From NCBI GenBank assembly GCA_038496445.1, contig JALMLS010000516.1:248001-312000 (forward strand): DNA of 64,000 bases, written 5' to 3'. The translations under genes were made by a program, and so were the position numbers. Origin of the DNA: Trichosphaerium sp. ATCC 40318. Lineage: Eukaryota; Protista; Tubulinea. The notes beneath the pieces were generated by a model that had not been told where the DNA came from, did not search any database, and was given only the letters and a program-made list of their open reading frames with translations. Numbering within the stretch: the first letter of the stretch is position 1; each line of letters opens with the position of its first letter. Below, in pieces: positions 2,221 through 32,425 of the stretch.

Positions 2221-5200
2221 ATGGAGTACCGTGATGGAAAAACCTCCCAAGGTACGCACTATCGATACTTGCACTTTTGGGGACCTACTATAGCGATTTT
2301 AAATTTTTTGAGCCATGCTTCCGTTTTCAGCCTTTCTTATGATCGTTCAACGCAATACATTTCTGACGCTAGCTCTATGCATCAACTCAATACGGCGTCG
2401 TTTGTTGTTAGGAGCTTTTGCTTTTTTTTTCAAAGTAACGTCAGTACAGCTATTAAAACCAATGTATAGGTAGTCCTGATAAGCCAGTACGCAAGAAATC
2501 TCAACAAAGTGAAACTTCTGGCAATACAAAGACGAAAAGGACGCAGAAAGGTTTCAATATTAAGCAAGGTAAGGCTACATTATGCTTTTTGGGCGAAAAC
2601 ATCGACAAAACAAAGTAGGAAAAAGCGTTATCAGTTTTTGTTCACCGTTTTACATTCCGCGCGTGCTACGTCAAGGCTAGCATACGCGTCTTAAATGTAA
2701 CCATCAAACGAAACAGTTTTTATTTACAAAAAACTTGTAGTTATCTCGTTGAAATCGCCTCGGTTCGGCAAGTCTAGCAAGAAGGATCCATTTCGGCCAA
2801 GGAAAAAGTCCAAAAAAGCTAAAACATCTAGAAAGACACGATCAGCCTCGTGGGTGTTTGGATCTGTTAGTAAGAAAAATGCACCATACACACATAGGGA
2901 TACAACGTCAAATGCACCAGGAAGACCAACGGGTGATCGTCAACGTCCAAGGACAAAGTCAACGAATTGGTCTGCTGGCACTAGCAACAATCGCTCGACT
3001 TTTGTTGATCCTATAGACCCTCAGAGTGATAGATATGATGAATTACGTTGTATGTTACAACGTGATGAGCTGCTGGGAATGCAATTTGCCCATGATGGAA
3101 GCAGTACGTAGGCCTTCATTAGGACTAACATTTTATTCCTTTTTATTTTTTTTTCTCCATTTTTGGAGGGAATTGGCACAAAGTTGTCTGGGCGATTTTT
3201 AGTCTGTATCGCCTTACTTTTTTGCGTGATTTCCTCTTTGTTAATTAAGGATAATTTTTAGTTAAAAATGGTAGCGGTAGCGAGAAGAGAAAAAAAGAAA
3301 AATCTCCACGTGCTGTAAGTCAGCCTGTTTATAAAATTGTACCAAGGATACAAAACATATCTCCTGCGCTTTCTGTGAATAGTACAAAGCAGTCTCCTAG
3401 CAGTACATTCACTTCAGGATCTATTAATGATCAATATGTCAGTGACGTTCGCACGTTCTCTGATTCTTCGTCTACATTTGAACAAACCCGGTCAACGTAT
3501 ACAACAGATGCAGATGGAGGCTTTGCAGATTACTATAATAGACCATTATCACCAATTACTACAGTTGATAGTAGTGATGATACATTTTCTGACTTTTCAG
3601 CTTCTATTGAAGAGCATCTCGGTGTCCATATCACAGTTGAGAGTCAAGGTACGTATATAGGTGTAAATCGTGTTTGCGTTAATTTTTTTTAAAGATGAAG
3701 GTTCAATAGGCCGTTCAGATCCAAAACCGTACAGTGTAGCAGCGTCTGTACCTAAAAAGTTTAAAGCAAAAATGCCTCGAACTGAGTGGGAGCCTTATAA
3801 TAGCAGCACGCACAGCGATATTGTTGTGCAAGGCAGTGAGTCTATTGGTAGTGATAGTCTCAGCGATAAAGTTGAAGGAACTACTTCTTCAGAGAGTATA
3901 AACAGTAGCCACGATGTACTCATGGAAACTGAACCAACTAACATTAAAAGTAGCGAAGTTGCCAATGATAATGATTCTGATTCGCGTACGTGGAACAAAC
4001 ACCAACACGAAGCAGTCCAACACAACTCACTGTTATTTTTCTAGAATTCGAGAAACCTGAAAGTGCAAGTGTTAGAGAGTTATTACAGTTTGCCAATAAC
4101 ATAGCTATGATAAGAAGAAATTCTGTACACTCTAAGGAAGAACAATTAAAGGTTCGAAGTAAAGAGAATCTATGTACGTCTAAAAAACATTCTCAAAAGT
4201 CTGACTTTTGTTTCTTTTTGCTAACATTGTCGACTTAGTTGCAGTGATTAAAAGAGAAGAAGGGTCATTCTCAAAACCTCATAAAGACCAACAACAAGAT
4301 AAATACACTGGTGGCATTTCTATTAAGCGTCATTCATTAAAAGTAGTTAAAGCTAGCTCTAGCGTTAGTAGAGTTCATATCAACAATGTTCTTGGAAGAA
4401 ATAACTCACAGAATCTACAAGCTGTTGTGTCATCAATAGCAGCAAAGGGAGGAAAAAATAATGCGACAAAACCTATTGTCAAACTAGATAAGATCCTTAT
4501 ACCAAGGATAAACTTTAACGCCGAAATGTCGACTGAAAGTTCATCAACGGAGAGCAGTAGCTCGGATTTAAATGACAGTGATATTGTTTCTGGTACTGCT
4601 TCATGGCATTCTACTTATAATGGTATTGGAGAAAAGTTAAATATTGGAAGCACATTTCAAAGTGCTTATGATCATAATATACCTAAATCACGTGTTATTG
4701 CTTCACAAAGTGCTATAACACTTCGTTGTAGTGATGAATCTTTTACATCATCTTTCTCTTCTACATCATCTTCTGATGATGCTATGAGTCTGGAGTATAT
4801 TGCTGGTAAGACTATTGCTTCTCTAAATGTAGCAAGGAAGCAAAAGAGAGGTATCTCCAATGATAAGTCAACGTTGCTTAGCGAAGAAGGTATGGCGGTG
4901 TTTTTTTTTCTTTTGTTTTTGATGTTCTTGTTAACAATGGTGTTCTTTTAGATGACTCTTCTCAATTTAGCAAGCCTAAACAAATGTTAATCACCCCTAC
5001 ATTAGATGTTATTCGAACTAAAGAGATACACGGTGGTACTTTCTCGTCAATTCAAAGTGGATCTGTATCACAACCTCTAAGTGAATCAACTATTTCATCT
5101 GACTATTCAACTGAAGATGAAGAGTTATCACTAGATGAGAGAGCACGTGCTCTTCAAAGTAGGCGCAGTATAGCTATGTCTTTAAAGATACAAAGAAAGT

Positions 5201-8200
5201 CACCAGGAAGTAAGAGAAGAATCGTATCACCAAATAATCAAAAAGGCAGAGGCTCTGTAAGTTCTTTCAATTCAGATACTGCATCTCGTAGTGTAATTGG
5301 CCAACCAAAAACGTTCAATATTAAACAACAACATCAAGAACAAGCTAATCATTATCAGTGTAAACCTACAGGTAGTGAAGTAACAGGAACGAAGGTGTCA
5401 AGAGTAAAAATGTCTCTTAAACCGAAAGAAAATAATAAGAAAAGAAAATGGGTTCATGGTATTGTATCAACAGTTTATGTTGAGGAGCCACCTGAGCGTG
5501 ATTTAACCTGGAACTTATCGTATGATCCCAGAAGATTTGCTAAATTGGATAATACCGGAGATAAAGAGCATATAAAGATTGCTCTTGGTATTGATAAAGC
5601 TGAAACTAAGAATGATGTTGAACAGGATTCAACTTCAACAAAAGAAGAAAAAAGTGAGATGAAGTATCCGCACACAACAAAGTCTCCAAGACCGTTGGGT
5701 AAACTTTTTTATAACACACAGAAACGACAAGGTAAGAACCATTCTCGAAACAAGAAAAATTCGTTGATTTTTTTTTACTTGTTTTTTTCTCTTCCTTTGT
5801 TGAGGTCTACGCTATTAGGAGTTTTTCTTCGTTTTCATAAATATATCTTCTAATACTCCATTGTCATTATTAGAATTTTCATGTCAGTAAAATCATTTTA
5901 TAGAGCCCTTAATTTAATTCCTCTTTTTTTTTTCCTTCATTGTTTATAATCGTTTTTTTTAGACAGTTTGAGTGTTCCTGAAAAACCTGACAATACAATG
6001 ATTTCAATAGACAGTATGTATTTTTATATAATAGTTTATTAGAGGCTTTGAACAGTAACCAAAAACAATAGGTGAAGGTGATAGGATTGATACTAAGCTT
6101 GAAGAGTATGATGATTTCACTGATTCTCAACCAACAAGTGGAAGGTTTCAATTAAGTCAAGTGAGCCTTCCTACTAGTATTGAAGGAACGTTTCAAATAG
6201 TTCCTACACTTAAAACACAACTATCACGAAGTAGTAAAAACTGTGATACTCCTGCTGCACCTACTGCAATGGAGGTTGAGATAAAGTCTGGATTGCCTTC
6301 TGAAAGAAGCTTAACACTAAGTTCTTATTCGGATAGCTTTGAACACCCTGATACTCCAAAAGAGGAGATTAAAAGTCAGAAAGATATTTCTTCTATAAGA
6401 GATAAACCTCTTGCTTTTGGGAAGTCTACAAGAGATAATAATATCTCACGAAGAATGAGTTTAGGGTGCGTTTTTCTGTTAAAAATAAGAAAAAGTTTGA
6501 GAAGATTATTTGCTTACGTTCTTGCTTAGTAGTGATATTGACAACTCTGATGGTGATGACAAGCGATACTCGGGGATTCAAAAGCGTGATAAAGGTATAT
6601 ATTTTTCTAGTTGAGTTTGTGGTGCAACGAGCACTCAATGGAAGATAAAAGCGTTAATTTTTTTTTTACTAGGATTATTACATGTTTGTATATCAAAAGC
6701 TAGAGGGCTTGTTGATGAAGATTTAAACGCATACTGTCTTGTAAAGTTTGGCCAGTATACTGTCAAGTCTTCTCCAGCATGTAGAGATTGGCAATTCTCA
6801 GTTCGTTTGCATGTGTTAGCTACATCTGATCCAAACGTTGAGGTACAGAATAATTTTTTTAAAAGTTTTGTTGACAATGTTTTGTAGATCCAAATATGGA
6901 GTACAGATACGGGATCAGATGATGTATTTATAGGCCAATATAAATTCAATATTGATGAGGTTATAAGTGATCGTAGAGAAGAGAATTGGTTTGCTCTTAG
7001 TGGTCCTGAAGGAGCCGAAGAAATAAGTGTTTATACAACTTTTGGTTGGCTTCCTAAAGAAGTAAGTTTTTGCCTTGTGATCATATGCATGGTTTAATAT
7101 ACTCTCTTAGGATCCAGAAATACGTAGTGGACTAACTCTGGCATCTTTACGGAACACATATGAACGCGAACTTGCGGAGATGGCATTGAATCTGAAAACG
7201 GATGATTTGAACTTGACTATTTATAACCGAGCTTCTGACGCAGAAGAAGAAAGTGATGTTTTCAATGAAATGTCGTCAAGTCCACCGCAGACAAGTGTAG
7301 AGAAACTTCAAGCCGGAATAAAACTTCTTTCCGTGAGTAGAACACCTTCAAGTCGGATATGGTATGCGAAGAAACAGATGTTTTTCTTTCTCATGATCAC
7401 GTGATTAATGCGTTTTTTTAGGAAGATGACGTCTCTTAATACTGATAATCAGATTAATGGAAATACAAAACAAATAAGTGTTTGTGGTGATTTCAAGTTA
7501 TTCGTACTTGACCACACTGTTGTGAAATTGAAGCATGACAACAAACTTCATAATGTTCGGTTTTTTTCTTCTTTTGCTTTTTTTGTCCCTCTGCTATGCA
7601 CTAAAAGGATGTGTTTTCTTATGTTTCCTGTTTAGATATTTAAAATACTTATAAAGAAGGATTCGTCATCTTGGTCAGTATACAGGAGATACTCTCAGTT
7701 TATAGAGCTACAAAAACAAGTGCGCATTTTGATCGATTATTGTTGTTGTAACCTTATTTCTTTAGTTGGTCAAGCGTTACAAGGGTATGTTTCCTTTAGC
7801 CAAGTTCAGTAAGCGTAGGATACATAACCTGAGTCCTCATAACGTTGATAAACGTCAACAGAAGCTTGAAAATTGGTATGTACCTCAGCGAATCTCCACG
7901 AACTCCTAGGTCCTAATTTCAGTTGTAGGTTAAGAAGTATTGTTAGTGTTGATGTAATTCTTAATGATCCGAATGTACAACACTTCTTTACACTCAACTG
8001 TGCCCAAGAACCAAAGTTAATAACTACAGAGCATGTTGGACATCTATACCGTATAATACCACGTAAGTACTTAAAGCCTGAAGTACGTAAGATATGGGTT
8101 GCTCTTAGAAATGGTGTTTTATTTAAATATAAAACAAAAAAAGAAAAACACCCGTACAGTATGACAGACTTGAAGAGAAGTACAATTCAACGTCTAGAAC

Positions 8201-18493: not shown

Positions 18494-19808
18494 TTATACT
18501 AACAAGTACACGATAACTGACAATACTACATATACAATAAATGACGAAACTTTTGCTTTATGTCCGTGAGAACTAGCGCCACGCCCGGATGAGCGACTGA
18601 TAAATAGTTAGAAAAAACTACAACGCCAAAAATGACAACTTTAGGTGGGACAAATCACAAAACGCTACGTACCAATTATGTCTGCATCCTCTTGAGACAA
18701 GACTGAATAAACACATTAATTACGTATAACGTTACTATCGAAAGTACTTACCAATGATCATCAGAAGTACCACACCAGCCATACATAGAGCAACAAAGAT
18801 TATTGGCACATGGATTCTAAAAAAGAAAGTTAAGAAAAAAGAGTTTTTCCAAAAATTTTCTCGTTTTTTCGTACCCCTGCGTGGCAACCGAATATAGTTG
18901 CTGGTGTTGGAGTAGTAGTACTCATTGGTTGCGGAGGTGGTGTTGTAGGAGGTGGAGTGCCCGTAGGAGGAGTACCCATAGTAGGATTTTGCGGTGTCGA
19001 TGAGACTCTGAAGTTCTCGGCTGAATAAAAAGTTGCAAAAGTACCAGCGTTTGACACCAAGTTTGTTGCTTCGATAACATTATTTATAGCTCCATTCTGG
19101 GTGAACCTCATACTGATAGGGATATTATAAGGCTTCGTTCCACCATTACAGTAGTATTTTCCTCCATTTCTTGTACACTGAGCCCATCCTGAGGATGTCT
19201 TTATTTCAGCTTTATCAACAACACCATACCCAGCGACACGATCAAGTTTGAACTCATAGTACCATAGATTAGGTGACACTGTTGTCAATCGAATACCGCT
19301 AGTAAAGTCACATGATACTCTTCTGTATAGTACTTTAATACGGCCACAAGCAGCAGAAGCAATCTGTGGGTATGTCTCGATGTTGATATCAAAATTCTCG
19401 GCTGCGCCGGCAAGATCAACGCCTTCAACGATGATCGAGTCCGTGGTAGCGCAAGAACACTGTGCGTTTCCTATTGCAGACCCTCCGTCGCATTTTATCT
19501 CAAAGCATGTACCACATCCAGCTCCGCCGTCGTGAAGAGATGCGCTCAACGCCGTTATACGACCGAAAGGGAAAGAAGATGTAGGAAAAGGGTCGCTTGA
19601 CACAAAGTTTTCACAAGCGGTTGTCGAGCCTGTGAAATCGTGTTTCGTCGCGGTAGCTGGTTTCCAATCGCCAAGAGGTACAGCTAAAACAGTGATAACG
19701 TCAGAACAAGGAAATAAACCGCAGGTAGCTGTAAAATCACGTGCCAGTTGATATTATACAGAAATGTGCTAGTACAAGAGTAGTTAGATATACTAGTCTT
19801 GCTGTCAT
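18494..19808 (-). CDS. Expansin-like protein with Pro/Thr linker, hevein-type chitin-binding domain (CBM18) and GPI-like C-terminus
   Basis: Signal peptide; DPBB motifs (ITALSASLHDGGAGCGTCFEIKC, FDI, GRIKVLYRRVSC); second expansin domain; PT linker; CANNLCCSMYGWCGTSDDHC; hydrophobic C-terminal tail. Confidence 0.85.
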
Positions 19809-24939: not shown

Positions 24940-27900
24940 ATGAGTGGAGATACTTACACATTGAGTTTGGGTACAAACCGCCAAGCAAGCCTGAAATCGC
25001 TTGTTATTGATGTAGAGATTGTTGGATGGTTCGCTAGAACAACTGTAACATTGACATTTGTTAACAAATCGGTTAACGTCTCACAAGGAGAGGTACGGCT
25101 CAAATATAACCACTCAAATAACATAACAGCAATAGCTTTTGTTTTCTTTGCCAGAAGAGGCTACGCTATGCTCATACGCTGCAGATATATCAGGTGTACT
25201 CGTTGACGCGTCGTTAGTAGAGGTAACGTAGCCTTTACTAGTTTGAATGTTAACAGAACAAACACAGAAGGAAGACGCTAGAGCAGCGTTTGAACAAGAA
25301 GCACGGAGTGTAGATAAGCCACAAACATCAATGGCACAAAAAGTAGCAGGTAAGAACCGAAACTAGGCCTCCAGATCGCCAGGCTAAAAACAGTTTTTCA
25401 TTGAATGGTCCCAGCTCACTGTTGAAAAGGGAACATGTTTAAGATGAGTATATCTCCTGTTAGGAAGAATGTACCGCGCATCATGCGCGTATCGTACTTG
25501 GAAGAACTGGTGTGCCTTCAAAATGAGTCAAGTGTTTACAAGCTACCTCTTTGGTTTAAAGATAAAATTCCGTCGTTGGAAATAAAGGTGATCTCGTTTA
25601 AACACTATGATTTTGTAGCATTGTTAACGTGTTATTCAGGTATCAGCTCTATGTGTTAAACAGATATTCATCAAGGGAGGATTATTGAATACTAAAACAC
25701 TAACAAATCAATATGGTGATATTGTTCATAGTTATGAGCAATCATCTGCTACACTGCAACAGTACGTTAGTTGATACTAATTCTTTTAACAGTGGAAGGG
25801 ACTTGGACGTTGACATAAAACTGCAATCTCGTTCTATTCCTACATTCGATGGCACAAACTTCTTTGTTGCAGCATCAGACAGCGTTTCTGGTCTGAGTGG
25901 GTCTACAAATAATGCTGTATGGAAGAACGTCTGTGTTCTGTGGGATACTTCGTACTCAAGAAAGGCTCAAATAACAGCTGACAAGGATGTGATGAACGCA
26001 ATATGGAACAAAAAGGTATGCTGATCAACTTATTGCGAATTTACTAGACAAGAGATTAACGTTGTCTTAGTTATCCAGATCTCATGTATATCTTATGCCT
26101 TTCTCAGTAGATACCGACCATGGTGTGAGATTTACTCGAGGAACCAGTTTTACAACATTTTGGAATCACGTGTCAAAAATGGAGTATCTGGGTGGCACGA
26201 ATTTAGGTACAAGACGTATTTTTACTATTTCTTGCTACCTTTCGTGTAGGTTCATTGTCTTGTAAGCAAACACTTAAAGGTACTACTATCGATGCATATA
26301 TTCTATTTTCGGATGGCATGCACTCTTTCGGAAGCGAGAAATTCCCTAAGGACCTAGAAGGTAGCAATGCATACACTTAATTCTTATTCAATAACTTGGA
26401 TGTAGTGCCTGTTTATGTCTTTTCTACGGCGACGACAGTAAACACTATGCTTCTCAAGAAAATAGCGCGCCAAAGCGGAGGATCATATCACAATCTTGCC
26501 ACAGTACGTAGACTATAGTTGAAAACTAGTAAATATCATGTTAGAAAGGACAACTTGATAGTATTGTTTCAGGTATTGGCAAAGAAGGATTTGCATTCAC
26601 AAGGCTAAAGAATAGCGATCTTGAATATTATCCGTCTATTGGAACAAAAATAACATCAAGTACTTCGTATTTTACTGTACTTACTAAGAGTACCGAGCTT
26701 CCTTTACAGCTACAAGGGGTAAAGTCCAAAACAATTTGTTTAATAGAATTCACTGATCCTATTCAAAGGTGTACCGAGATAATAGCAGAGGTCAATTGAA
26801 TGAACGGGTAATAAGTGTAAATCAAGTAAGTTATTAGTTTCATGGCGCGAGTAACTAAAGTTGTACGCAAAAGGGCATTATCCGGACAGATATCATTGCG
26901 AAATGTTGGGCACTGAAAAAGATATCACAACTGGAGTTATTGGATGAGGCCAAAGCAAATGTCAGCGATATAATTAGTGTACGCTCTTTGCTTTATATGG
27001 CTCTAATATTCATTGTAGGTCAGTAAACAGTACGGCATTGTGAGTAATTACACGTCCTTCATTGTTTTAGAATCACTTGACAAGTACTTGAAATGCACGT
27101 GCATTATATATTATTGTTGTTAAGTTGCCTCGTTGCTAATTTAATATTAAGATGATATCGAGCCACCTGCTTCCTTGCCTTTAGTAAGGAATCAATATTT
27201 TGCTATCAAAGCCGATAAGGCTGCTATTGAGAGGGAACACAACAATAACAGGATTTTCACAGTTCAAAATCTGTGGCAAAGGTATTTCTTTTTTTGGTAA
27301 AATAGTATTAATGATTAAAGGCGTGTCGCTTGGTGGAATGAAGATACAACTTGTCCTGAGTTTACTATGTCTCATCAATACTACCATTGTCACAGTTATC
27401 CTAGCACCAGCACTGAATACGAACACCTTGCTTTATCTTCAGTTCAACCCAAACAAAAACAGATTGGCACCCCTGTCGTTTTGGGTAAGTTATTTATTCG
27501 GGTTAGAAACAACTGATATTCTTTATTTCAAGGTGGATGGATATTAAAACAACACACGGGAGTTATAAAGTCTTTAAAGAGGAGATACTGTAAATTAGAT
27601 GAAAATAACATTACCATGCACAGGGGAAAAGACTCAAAGTCTTTGACATCAATACCACTCAACAAGGTCACAGATGTGAAGATTTCTAACTTGGCAACAA
27701 AAGAACTTTCAATCATTACAGAGGGAAGAACATATAGTATGAAGCTACCAGATGAAGACCCTCAAATGTGGATAGGTGGAATACGAGCAAATTCAAAAAG
27801 AGCACGTGAGAAGGTTGAGCAAGAGAGTGTCGGTGAAGACCCATTTTCGGACTTTGGTTTAGTTGATCTGTCTGCTCAAAAGCGTGACACTTTTAATGGG

Positions 27901-30900
27901 ACATCAAAAATCGCAAAGGCTCTCCGTTTAAAAGTATCAAAATCTAAAAGGAGATATGTTGATGAAGTTGATGACAATCTGTTCGGGGGGTTCACGTATA
28001 ATACAAAGGCAGCACAAGACCACAAAGACTCGAGACAAAAAGCAAGAGTTAAAAAAAAGAAAGAAATTAAACAAGATTCTTCTTCTTCTCCTTCTTCTAC
28101 AGATGATTATGACCTTTTAAAAGTTATAGGTAAAGGCTCTTTTGGAAAGGTATGTTATTTTTAAACAAAATTTGTCGTTCTTAGATAAGGTCTAACAAGG
28201 AATGAGTTTAGACATTGCAAGTACGAGAAAAAAGCACAGGCAAAATAAAGACAATGAAAGTGCTTAATAAAAGAAGCCTTCCTGGAAATTCAGTTTCCCA
28301 AGAATTGACCGAGAAGATGAGCGCTCCTGATAACCCGTTTGTGACAAAAGTTGATGTACATCAGTATACCACTATGAGCACATTATTAATCTTTTTTCTT
28401 TAGGCAACTTTTGAATCAGAAGACAAAATGTATATTATTGAAGAAGATGTGGACGGAGGAGAACTATTCTATCATTTACAAAAGAATGGTCGTATGTCTA
28501 CAACAGATACAAGGTTTTATGGTGCCGAGATGCTGGAGGGACTTGATGCTCTAGCCAAAACAGGTGTTAACAAGTAAGTTACAATACATATCGGCACCTT
28601 TTTCTAAAACGCTACAGAAAGCTATCGATGGACAACTTCAGGCTGGATGGTGAAGGCCACGTCAAGATAGATAGTGTGACAGAACAAGATATCGCTAGAA
28701 ATGACGATGATTCTAGAACAGCGACCTTTTGTGGGACTCCTGAGTACGCTGGATTTTTTCAAAGAAAACTCAGAGTTTTTGTTCAACTTTTCATTATTTC
28801 TTAATCGTTCAGGTACCTTCCACCTGAAGTATTAAAAGGAGAAGAACATACAGAAGCAAGTACCATGTATCAGTAAGAATAACCTAAATTCATGAAAAAG
28901 AAAGTACTGTAGGTTAATAGTTTCACTTTAGATATGGCAATATCCTTTATGAAATGATAACCGGTTTACCTCCACATTACGACACTCAAGTTAACAAGAT
29001 GTATGAAAATATATTAAGGAAGGAAGTACAATATCCGAAAGACATAGATCCTAACGCAAAAGACCTACTGTCAAAGGTAAGTATTGAAAACAACCAAAAC
29101 AACCTGAAAAGTCATTCAAAGACACTTATTTTTTTTTAGCTGTTGGATAAAGACCCTAAAAAAAGAGCAACCACTGATGAAGTACGCAATCACCCTTTCT
29201 TTTCAAGGGTTGATTGGAAAGACATTGTTGAAAAGAAACAAGACGCTCCTATAAAAGTTCGAAAAACAGAAGCACTTGACACGAGCTACATAGATCCTAT
29301 GTTCACCTCTGAACGTGCGTCTCAGAAAAAAATAAGAAATAGTGTTACTTTGTCAATCTCATCTTCTTTCAGCGATAGAAGCTGACTTATGCCTCGATTC
29401 ATTAGAGGACTCGTACGACAATGCGTTTGAAGGGTTTACGTATGTTTCCGAAAATACTACGGCTTCCAAACCCTCTGGACAGACAAATAACCTTGATGGC
29501 GACTTTTCTGGATTTACATACCAAGCAGCACCTGCTGCTGAATTCCAGTCGTTAAAAACACCAAAAGATGATAAATTAGATGTTTTCCAAGGATTTACAT
29601 ATGTTGCAACAAACGCAGAAGCTCCAAAAGTAGTCAAGAAATTTCCCAAAAAAACAGTGTTGCAACACCGCAATGGAAGGAGTTTCCCGCAAGTTTCAAA
29701 TACACCAAAACTAGGATTAAAATTATCAGCGGATTCAAAAGACACAAATCAAAGTACTTTATCACTAAGAGCAAACAAAGTGAGGGTAGGTGGAAAGGGA
29801 TCTGTTAGAAGAAAACAAAAAAAAAGAAAAAAAAAACCAACTTTGAAAAAAGGTATAGCAAACTCTTTGATAGCGCTTCTCTAATCTTAATTATAGAGTC
29901 CATCAATGGTAGCACAAATACATCAGAGTGTGTACAGGGTAAGAAGATAACAACGGCAAGAGGTTTGTATCAGTTATGTTTTTTCTTAATCCAACACATT
30001 TTCATAGAGTCAATAACAGATCTATTAGATATTCCAATGTTTCCTGATGTAAGCACTCAAATAGCAAATTATTAACCTTTGAGCTTAGGAAAAATACTTA
30101 CCTAGCCTAACTGAAACAGATCTAGAAAGACTTGTCTTTCTTAATCTTCCAGTAGATGAGACACTGAGTGAGGATACTAACGTATGCTTGACAACTCATA
30201 TTATGCCAGGTACTAATTTGACTTTTAATCATGTGCTCTAACCATAATTGTGTAAGTCACAGATATCAGTGTTTTCGATCAAGCATCCACTGCCAGCAAA
30301 ATACAAATTATAATGAATGAGGACTTGAGGGTTTGTAAATCTAACTTGTCTACTGTTTACCTTGTGACTCTTTGTACAGTCACAATATGATGTCTCTACT
30401 TCTGGTGAGGACTATGTCGCAAACGCTGTCTCTTCATACAAAAGAAACCAACCCAAAAAAGCATTAAGGTACTTGTCTACTCCACTTGATATAGACTTGG
30501 ATAATGCTGCTCTATTGCGTACAGTATTGTTTCATCTACAAATACATGATACTCTAAAAGTATGGGAGAACGTCCAACGCCAGCTCGTGGAAGCAAGACC
30601 AGAAGATCCTGTAGCAAAAAGAGACCTAGCTGCTGTACTAATAGAGCAAATCAAATCAGAGCCCGACAGTAGTGTACGTCCACATTTAACACAAAAGACA
30701 AACTATCCGTTGTGAGGTTGAGACAGTGCTAACATTAAAAAAAGGAGAAAAAGAAAAAGTGTATTGAAGAAGCCATTGATCTACTGAATAATGTAATCAA
30801 AGGTAAATGGGATGTTAGGTTTGATCAAATTCAAGTGATTGCTCTATCCGATCTTTCAAAAATACTTGCCACAAGCAAAGACATGAACAATTTCCATTCT

Positions 30901-31510
30901 ATACAAGTACGCTATTGATTTGTTAAAGACTTTTTCTTTCTTGTTTCTTGATTTTTTTGTAAAAAAACCGCATTTGGTTTTACCGTTTGACTTGGTTTTA
31001 TAATCAAGAAGCGAACTTGTTTACGTAATTTACTACAAATGGCTCATGCAATAATAGGCACTTGTGGATTCAAGGTTAATTGTCGATAAAATGCCAGTAG
31101 ATATTCGTATTGTTATTCAATGGTCAACACCAAACACAAACATAGAGCTTCATGTCACAGAGCCGACAAAAGAACGTTGTTATTCCTTCAATAACAAGAC
31201 AAGTATTGGTGGTATGTTAAGCAGAGATTCTAATCATATAGGCCCTGTAGAATATGTGATTAAAAATGCACCAGTTGGAAACTACAAAGTTGAGGTGATT
31301 GAAGAAAACACGTGATTTTTGCTGAGTTTTTTTGTTTTTTAGGCAGCACTTTGTCATGGTGTACAAACAAGACTTCCTTGCTATGCTTTGGTACAAATTT
31401 GGACACATTATGCCACACCGCTTGAGAACAGCACAAAAGCCATCTTGAGGTTCACAAAAGCTTCTGAAACAATCAATGTTTGCACTCTGTCTACGACAAC
31501 GTTTCTTTAA
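24940..31510 (+). CDS. VIT-vWA-[PH-AGC pseudokinase]-TPR-DUF2135-like chimeric protein
   Basis: VIT (IDVEIVGWFARTTVTLTFVN), vWA-like (VLWDTSYSR, YILFSDG), YGIVSNYTSFIVLESLDKYLKYDIEPP, LWQRRVAWWN, then in-frame PH and kinase (LLKVIGKGSFGK, TFCGTPEY), then TPR-like helices and MPVDIRIVIQWSTPNTNIELHVTEP...GPVEYVIK. Confidence 0.8.
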
Positions 31511-32425
31511 CTTGGAGGATTATGTTCGCGTTACTTTGCTTTTACTACTAATAAAGTGACCTTACAGTTACAACACTTCCTTTTATGTACATCCAAGTCT
31601 TACATCCAAGAGATCAGAACAGCGTAATCGCATTCTTGTAACCGAAAAGACTCTAGTTTTACTGAGGCTAAGGGTTTTTTTCAGAAAAAAATAGGCAAGC
31701 TTCTAGAAGTTTCTATTTGTAAATTATATAGGTTACTCCAACCATGACGAGCTTTGACTTAAATAAACGTTTGGGCTACATAAAGAAATGTTAAAAACAA
31801 TCTACTACAATACGATTGAAGGAGAAGCTAAGTTACAAGCGTTTCTAGTGAATCTGTGCACTTTTGTCTTGCAATAAAATAGCTACAGCTACTTCAATGA
31901 CTGTTACAAGGCACGTGATATCATGGAACAATTTAATGTCCGATTCAGTTGATGGTCTCCTTTCTTAAAATAGTAGTGTATCTATTGACATAGACCATAC
32001 ATTGTCAGACACATAGATATAATCGCATCTCTTTCAGCTGACATGATACTTTCTTCCGAGATTAATGCCTTGTCGAGCGCAACATTGTAATCATTGAAAT
32101 CTAAATAAAGCAGAATCACTTAACTTTCAACTCAGTCGCAACAGCTCTTACATACATAACCATGGCAGAAGAGTACAAGTATCTCAATAAAGATATAACC
32201 AATTTGAACGTACGTCAACGTCAAAGTGGTTTAATTACGCTTAAATAACCGCTATCGTAGTGTTGGACAGTATTGGAAGGTTCACAAACTGCATCTACCG
32301 TTGTACCCAAACAAGTGATCAAATTCGTTAACCTATTGTCCGTTAAGCATTGCGAGTGCGTCTAACACGAATATAATTACCTGTTAAACAGTTTTGCAAG
32401 AGCATTGATCAAAGAGGCCGAAAAT

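Follow-up and report, generated by a model that had tools for sequence, protein, structure and literature searches.

Described proteins come near to the subject of this report from several sides. In PARP4, which is intracellular, a VIT-vWA module is coupled with an enzyme-type domain, and the integrated decoys of plant NLRs, together with pseudokinase baits, hold an inactive copy of a host protein, with its recognition features kept, inside a multi-domain protein. Among amoebae, the cytoplasmic VIT/vWFA protein Vwa1 of Dictyostelium, proposed to be a binding hub and found to co-purify with an SCF E3 ligase (PMC10539598), was the only relevant item met with in the literature searched on VIT/vWA proteins, or on integrated decoys and pseudokinases, in these organisms, and of the proteins studied so far it comes nearest. 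The gene considered here is at 24940-31510 on the forward strand of a 64-kb stretch of DNA ('the window') from the amoeba Trichosphaerium sp. ATCC 40318 (70-Mb assembly, contig JALMLS010000516.1, 248,001-312,000; internal label G000:C29:248001-312000). Its ends correspond to the two halves of a bacterial-type VIT-(vWA-like)-TPR-DUF2135 protein and between them is a PH-AGC kinase cassette of Akt/PKB type, the catalytic residues of which have been replaced. The reading to which we incline, with modest rather than strong confidence, is that one gene encodes a scaffold-displayed dead mimic of Akt, serving as bait or adaptor, with the cassette having come from the DNA of a resident kinase gene.

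The window, with a G+C content of ~37%, is eukaryotic DNA in which coding stretches are short and split by introns of 39-150 nt. For the gene model, frame-compatible GT-AG pairs were listed between adjacent coding stretches and the choice among them was made by homology and RNA; family, profile and structure searches were run exon by exon, with exons being joined only in scripts testing frame continuity. There are 29 exons and ~1,650 codons in the model, and its 28 introns are short and of GT-AG type, with one possibly being GC-AG. Whichever splice combination is tested, a single open reading frame (ORF) of 1,644-1,660 codons results, which begins with the ATG at 24940, ends with the stop at 31508-31510 and is not interrupted by any stop in between. 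The end of exon 11 is ambiguous, being either at 27094 (GC donor, 57-nt intron 27095-27151) or at 27115 (GT donor, 36-nt intron 27116-27151), with the frame kept either way. The longer of these introns, after ...LDKYLK, is without a normally spaced GT donor, and the 36-nt option adds seven Cys/Ile/Tyr-rich codons. In stop-free stretches Pfam recognises VIT (24940-25203), PH (27517-28161), Pkinase (28404-28574 and 28921-29136) and Pkinase_C (29140-29382 and 29336-29881). The gene is single copy, and nowhere else in the genome is there an Akt-like cassette of this kind.

That the cassette and the C-terminal half of the scaffold share one transcript is as good as certain. A 1,544-nt RNA contig (L025, from Joint Genome Institute (JGI) sample 3300016894), found via its 202-aa protein in a word search with the kinase-tail exon, is ~100% identical to 29570-31600 of the window with eight introns spliced out (29853-29896, 29963-30007, 30049-30088, 30210-30256, 30331-30379, 30674-30744, 30907-31057 and 31295-31342), and so has the AGC tail, four linker exons, the TPR region and DUF2135 on one spliced messenger RNA (mRNA). 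The original prediction, made from the window's letters, had spliced across this point with a single intron of ~550 nt; the RNA has there, between 29853 and 30379, five introns (44, 45, 40, 47 and 49 nt) and four small exons. A boundary between separate genes near 29.9 kb, which that prediction had itself named as the finding that would count against it, is not what is seen, the mRNA running straight through. Compared with the genome, L025 has one extra A at 29647 (A8 versus A7) and another at 30454 (A7 versus A6), both in coding sequence, for which assembly error, strain difference or slippage could be responsible; a second genomic copy as their source is rejected, there being none in the genome. 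The genome version of the A-runs is taken to be the functional one because there the three L025 segments are all in the same frame, which is exactly the one in which the middle segment, of 200 codons, is open. In the 3' untranslated region the two also differ by 2 nt, at 31568.

The flanks had been taken for the two halves of a protein common in bacteria, and this was borne out. An alignment search with the TPR region led to 23 bacterial loci (Planctomycetota, Achromatium, Bacteroidia, Verrucomicrobiota, Bdellovibrio, Myxococcales and Aquimarina among them), at 16 of which the match is inside an uninterrupted ORF of 951-1,168 aa. Three bacterial relatives were scanned with Pfam, and all three have VIT N-terminally and DUF2135 C-terminally, with TPR models in two. 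When a family profile made from 16 full-length bacterial proteins (1,010 positions) was searched against all stop-free stretches of the locus, it mapped in order, positions 48-619 on 24979-27387 and 754-1008 on 30413-31492, with the cassette filling the gap; ~3.0 kb of genomic DNA separates the two blocks, where bacteria have a linker. No homology of the four linker exons in 29897-30330 to the paralogues or to the bacterial profile was detected.

Individual domains of the scaffold merit comment. The Pfam VIT score of exon 1 (22.4 bits) is under the cut-off of 26.5, since introns split the domain. For the vWA module of the original prediction, the support is at profile level: positions 41-544 of the bacterial profile align unbroken to the VIT-vWA of ITIH4 (22-593, E 2.6e-21) and of PARP4 (614-1180, E 1.4e-12), window exons cover profile positions 228-480 within that stretch, and the DTSYS of metal-ion-dependent adhesion site (MIDAS) type, GGT and SDG are present, these being invariant columns of the bacterial alignment. 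Pfam vWA models matched neither the window exons, nor the paralogues, nor the bacterial relative scanned, and a vWA-like identity is what the profile alignment and the DxSxS motif support. The TPR region corresponds to profile positions 754-883, on 30413-30912, and has the RPEEPQSHRDLA-type motif; the profile there also matches solved TPR proteins. Pfam DUF2135 gave no direct match to the two exon pieces in the window, and exons 28-29 correspond to the very part of the profile (880-1008, E 1e-27) that bears Pfam DUF2135 in the bacterial proteins. The predicted DUF2135 structure, with a predicted local distance difference test score of 84, is an eight-stranded beta-sandwich for which Foldseek gave no significant match and VIA-align ranked first, at Z 6.6, the beta-sandwich at the C terminus of a subtilisin (1WMD), narrowly ahead of TerD and collagen-binding domains; as modelled, the likeness is that of a common beta-sandwich and provides no functional lead. 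A relationship of DUF2135 to the vault-binding end of PARP4 was also considered and rejected, the fold search having given no PARP4 match. The invariant MIDAS, TPR and DUF2135 residues of the scaffold are retained in the amoeba gene. What the amoeba protein does not have is the N-terminal hydrophobic leader that takes up the first ~35 columns of the bacterial consensus, for which reason it is probably cytosolic; leaderless amoeba proteins suggest a change of compartment after transfer to a eukaryote.

For the 5' side the case is one of gene anatomy. Exon 13 opens with RRVAWWNE, which has its counterparts in KRRVAWWNNN of one paralogue (L023) and WxERVxWWE of the bacterial consensus; it has no stop for 54 codons, and at its end a GTAAGT donor leads into a 48-nt intron with a pyrimidine-rich acceptor, removal of which preserves the frame and brings the exon directly to the first PH codon. 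Immediately 5' of this acceptor is an in-frame stop, and the first in-frame ATG of the PH exon, 27616, is already inside the domain. We infer that the N half of the scaffold is fused here to the cassette. The junction as first proposed (...LWQR/RVAWWNED...VVLG/GWILKQ) has held up with respect to frame and quality of splice signals, with no RNA having been found over it. On these several counts, the claim that a PH-kinase cassette is in frame in a VIT/DUF2135 protein is upheld by the one ORF and the colinear profile, on RNA for the 3' fusion and by anatomy for the 5' one, and we regard a single-gene model for the whole of 24940-31510 as quite probable.

The cassette has the order PH, AGC kinase and C-terminal tail with hydrophobic motif, which is that of Akt/PKB, as had been predicted, and it has the Pfam PH, Pkinase and Pkinase_C matches to go with it. 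The PH score is above the 25.1-bit cut-off, and the closest solved relative of the domain is the 3-phosphoinositide-specific C-terminal PH of TAPP1 (1EAZ, E 1e-4), of which the K...KRRY is kept; as the basic KRRY is typical of 3-phosphoinositide binders, the cassette PH may be presumed to bind such lipids. The kinase is another matter. Its catalytic-loop exon has PKC, PKN, Akt and SGK as best solved matches, and the comparison with the intact PH-kinase gene on contig C23 of the same genome is instructive: GVIY-R-DLKPEN of the C23 gene is GVN-K-KLSMDN in the cassette (that is, YRDLKPEN has become NKKLSMDN, and YRD has become NKK), TDFG is IDSV (DFG to DSV, in exon 17), and AVDWWSFG of the alpha-F region is ASTMYQYG (DWW to TMY), the latter segments being equally long. 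The alignment of the loop is fixed by a phase-2 intron in its R/K codon that is common to the C23 gene, and with it the catalytic aspartate is replaced by lysine and the loop lysine by serine. With neither the catalytic aspartate, nor the F and G of DFG, nor the alpha-F aspartate remaining, the cassette kinase is predicted to be a catalytically dead pseudokinase, and the coupling of phosphoinositide signalling by an active kinase, as originally envisaged, is not supported. Kept in the cassette are the glycine loop GKGSFGK, the VAIK lysine (TMKVL), a probable alpha-C glutamate, DPKKR and, within RTATFCGTPEY, the activation-loop threonine site TFCGTPEY. The hydrophobic motif D-x-F-x-G-F-T-Y is present four times, the first copy being 5' of the kinase, and an F.GFTY regular-expression scan of six frames of the window has four matches, all of them in the frame of this gene. 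As far as sequence motifs go, loss has been selective: those for catalysis are gone and those for recognition are kept, with one of them multiplied four-fold.

Where did the cassette come from? The genome has intact AGC relatives, the PH-kinase gene on contig C23 (L034) and an SGK/S6K-like gene on contig C187 (L027), both of which keep the catalytic motifs that the cassette has replaced. Identity of the cassette to these two residents is 37-47% per exon; between the residents themselves it is 50-78% in the catalytic core, falling to 32-39% in the two terminal segments that were compared. Three introns match the C23 gene in position and phase: phase 0 after GKGSFGK, the phase-2 one in the R/K codon of the catalytic loop, and phase 0 in DLLxK/LLDK. 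Because of these, the cassette is traced to genomic DNA of a PH-kinase gene, and a retrocopy origin is rejected, as the cassette has seven or eight introns with three of them common to the C23 gene. The variable linker thus appears to have received, by copying of DNA, a module from a resident Akt/PKB-type PH-AGC kinase gene that has introns. No orthologue, nor the same architecture elsewhere, was found: the PH exon searched against 1.84 billion representatives had four matches, all with E >3e-4, and a word search had nothing.

The original prediction viewed the gene as a lineage-specific chimera, and as a one-off it has had to be given up, since in this genome the corresponding linker of paralogues is occupied by pieces of other host proteins. 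The DUF2135 exon has ~17 paralogous matches in the genome, and at many genome loci Pfam DUF2135 and VIT matches are on the same strand 3.3-5.4 kb apart. Eleven paralogues were fetched, with N and C halves matching those of the window gene, and the linkers of seven were scanned (Table 1). Six hold pieces of other host proteins and the seventh (L023) is without a Pfam match; it is the paralogue that matches most exons of the window gene, exon 13 included. Several of the inserts are short docking or modification motifs in multiple copies, a pattern of multiplied host motifs which the four hydrophobic motifs of the cassette fit.

The protein would then probably be a cytosolic VIT-(vWA-like)-TPR-DUF2135 member whose variable linker displays a non-catalytic Akt mimic. 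Its PH domain would bring it to phosphoinositide-rich membranes, and its TFCGTPEY and FxGFTY motifs would there serve as sites of binding or phosphorylation for any protein that recognises the loop and hydrophobic motifs of Akt, be it PDK1/TORC2-type kinases or foreign proteins targeting those same motifs, with the MIDAS-type site, TPR region and DUF2135 supplying the remaining contacts. The mimic could be regulatory, acting on PDK1/TORC2-type kinases as their sponge or adaptor, or it could be there for surveillance and bait foreign proteins. A broader thought, which we offer as distinctly speculative, is that the expanded amoeba family is a surveillance or capture system in which the linkers put on show, in multiple copies, the motifs by which central host proteins are recognised: histone tails, the C-terminal domain (CTD) of RNA polymerase II (Pol II), the ribosomal P-stalk tail, and the T-loop and hydrophobic motifs of Akt. 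The present gene would in that event bait binders or modifiers of Akt-family kinases, proteins of intracellular bacteria or giant viruses included, and the scaffold would turn the bait event into trapping or signalling.

Among other explanations, the one that fares best, doubtful though we consider it, is that the gene is a neutral or decaying chimera, an exon-shuffling accident that is transcribed without having a function of its own and in which the kinase is eroding. In its favour are the loss of catalytic residues, a cassette more diverged than the resident kinases, the two frame-breaking A-run differences in the RNA contig and the failure to find an orthologue. It has to contend with ~1,650 codons over 29 exons remaining open in the genome, with the scaffold having retained its invariant residues, with the selectivity of the loss just described, erosion of catalysis being accompanied by a four-fold multiplication of a recognition motif, and with host motifs being likewise multiplied in the paralogues.

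A less probable alternative, and in our estimation an unlikely one, is that there are two transcription units: a VIT-vWA gene ending at ~27.3-27.5 kb, either with its stop at 27298-27300 or, with an intron retained, at 27514-27516, and a PH-pseudokinase-TPR-DUF2135 gene starting from ATG 27367. The in-frame ATG, the in-frame stops after both unspliced donors and the want of an RNA spanning the 5' junction are all compatible with it. Two units would, though, be separated by only 67 nt (from the stop at 27298-27300 to ATG 27367) where intergenic spaces nearby are ~1-2.5 kb, and the family motif RRVAWWNE is in one exon with the donor leading to PH. Furthermore, 16 of 16 bacterial relatives, and the paralogues, carry both halves in one protein, and the C half is fused to the cassette on RNA. 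As for an active enzyme, a phosphoinositide-recruited Akt-like kinase phosphorylating targets held by the VIT-vWA scaffold, it is very improbable, for although the PH domain passes its Pfam cut-off with its basic lipid-binding motif kept, as are G-loop, VAIK lysine, probable alpha-C glutamate, T-loop site and hydrophobic motif, the intron-fixed alignment puts lysine for the catalytic aspartate and serine for the loop lysine, DSV and TMY are added to that, and both intact AGC kinases of the genome keep every residue that the cassette lost.

Several points tell against the dead Akt mimic on a scaffold that we prefer. The sole RNA contig, as assembled, reads in three frames and cannot encode a continuous protein. 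No RNA over the 5' junction (27282-27532) or the kinase core turned up in the searches made; JGI metagenome contigs queried with the junction exon and the PH exon gave nothing, which is weak evidence as records very near this genome are perhaps missing there. The in-frame ATG at 27367 would permit a shorter product without the N half. Some pseudokinases retain unusual activities, so that 'dead' is here a prediction from sequence. No orthologue was found from which selection on the cassette might be gauged, and for the role as bait or adaptor the grounds are analogy and what is seen across the paralogues. It is with these in the balance that our leaning is no stronger than was said at the outset.

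The features of the gene and of the paralogue linkers are collected in Table 1. Neighbouring genes are ~2.5 kb upstream and ~1 kb downstream. Elsewhere in the window, on the reverse strand at 18830-19603, is a 257-aa ORF with an expansin- or double-psi beta-barrel-like Cys pattern and a Pro/Thr-rich tail.

Table 1. Exons, domains and motifs of the window gene, and linker contents of paralogues (positions are those of the window or of the paralogue locus named)
Feature	Locus	Coordinates	Strand	Content or basis
Exons 1-4	window	24940-25092, 25136-25222, 25268-25349, 25430-25639	+	start codon and VIT; Pfam VIT on exon 1, E 1.5e-4
Exons 1-4, whole span	window	24940-25639	+	bacterial profile positions 48-194, E 1e-7 to 8e-7
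Exons 5-8, vWA-like region	window	25732-26015, 26071-26206, 26250-26360, 26406-26503	+	profile positions 228-419
Exons 9-12, remainder of N half to ...NLWQ	window	26545-27281	+	profile positions 421-602; paralogue matches
Exon 13 (junction)	window	27321-27484	+	family motif RRVAWWNE, then unconserved linker and GTAAGT donor; from splice sites and family motif
Introns bordering exon 13	window	27282-27320 (39 nt), 27485-27532 (48 nt)	+	splice signals
PH domain, from first codon of exon 14	window	27533-27849	+	Pfam PH, 27.9 bits
Hydrophobic-motif copy 1 (FGGFTY), PH-kinase linker	window	27982-27999	+	regular-expression scan
AGC kinase domain, exon 14 end and exons 15-20	window	28100-29314	+	Pfam Pkinase and Pkinase_C; AGC kinase identity; shared introns
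Exons 15-20	window	28212-28349/55, 28404-28573, 28618-28743, 28813-28872, 28932-29076, 29140-29314	+	kinase
Exon 17, degenerate catalytic loop and TFCGTPE site	window	28618-28743	+	alignment to PKC/Akt structures and C23 gene
Exon 21, AGC C-terminal tail with lysine-rich end	window	29373-29852	+	Pkinase_C match; L025 covers from 29570 onward
Hydrophobic-motif copies 2-4, exon 21	window	29426-29443, 29504-29521, 29585-29602	+	motif scan
Four small linker exons, cassette to C half	window	29897-29962, 30008-30048, 30089-30209, 30257-30330	+	introns spliced out in L025
Exons 26-27, TPR region with ARPEDPVAKRDLA motif	window	30380-30673, 30745-30906	+	profile 754-883, E 1e-13 and 2e-10; L025
Exons 28-29 and stop, DUF2135-type beta-sandwich	window	31058-31294, 31343-31507, stop to 31510	+	profile 880-1008, E 1e-27 and 8e-4; L025
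3' untranslated region up to RNA contig end	window	31511-31600	+	L025 alignment
Paralogue linker L014	C224:22500-32499	~3608-5607	-	H2B-type histone fold, Pfam Histone 1.4e-9, then GKGLGG repeats like histone H4 tail
Paralogue linker L015	C87:131000-140999	~2851-5370	-	Pfam Rpb1 C-terminal repeat 9e-18, 11 YSPxSP heptads, RS and RGG tracts
Paralogue linker L017	C73	linker		Pol II CTD heptads
Paralogue linker L016	C88:113500-123499	~4145-5182	-	Pfam Ribosomal_60s tail 1.7e-7; six P-stalk-tail-like copies (..DMGYGLFG / GGGLFG)
Paralogue linker L018	C10	linker		H4-like fold, weak matches
Paralogue linker L024	C4:634000-643500	~4498-5629	scaffold orientation	G-patch 1e-13 and KH
Paralogue linker L023	C118:125000-134999	~3100-7100		~4 kb mostly helical coding linker, no Pfam match

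By its sequence the architecture is a new one built from known domains, with the VIT, TPR and DUF2135 features tested for being present in the scaffold; as an active Akt-type kinase the gene would not qualify, its catalytic residues being replaced. No paper mentioning DUF2135, or host-protein inserts in amoeba VIT-vWA proteins, was found in the literature searched, and the earlier impression that the architecture is undescribed agrees with that. If the protein is made as modelled, nature has done an experiment that separates the recognisability of Akt from its catalysis, in that a dead kinase with four docking motifs and a loop open to phosphorylation is combined with a PH domain predicted to bind lipids, and the whole is attached to a module for metal-dependent adhesion. 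The gene and its paralogues, the latter with histone, Pol II CTD, ribosomal-stalk and splicing-factor pieces in the corresponding place, together point to an undescribed eukaryotic use of a bacterial-type scaffold, whether for decoys, modifying-enzyme sponges or adaptors. Exon shuffling, too, appears to be clearly exemplified, for a module of several exons, with introns in common with the gene from which it came, is now in the variable linker of a recipient gene.

How does this compare with what is known? The bacterial VIT-TPR-DUF2135 proteins, for instance those of Aquimarina (L055), Achromatium (L039) and Myxococcales (L048), have the same order of VIT, vWA-like DxSxS, W..R..WW, TPR with RPEEPQSHRDLA, and DUF2135. 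They differ in being single ORFs with a short variable linker and a hydrophobic leader, and in having neither PH nor kinase, whereas in the amoeba gene there are 28 introns and a ~770-codon cassette, and the leader is absent. With Akt/PKB-type kinases, the C23 gene of the same genome included, the cassette has in common the PH-AGC-tail order and TFCGTPEY, and with the C23 gene the three introns as well; it differs from them in its replaced catalytic residues, in having the hydrophobic motif four times and in being embedded in another protein. PARP4 and the inter-alpha-trypsin inhibitor heavy chains are like the family in that its profile aligns to their VIT-vWA module, and are both without TPR or DUF2135. 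The likeness of PARP4 goes further, to the company of an enzyme-type domain, though in PARP4 that domain precedes VIT and is active. In plant integrated decoys, as in the amoeba family, different members carry different host pieces; the scaffolds are unrelated and the likeness is one of analogy only. Dictyostelium Vwa1, for its part, belongs to the VWA5A-like subfamily, is ~112 kDa and has had no inserted host-protein module reported (PMC10539598).

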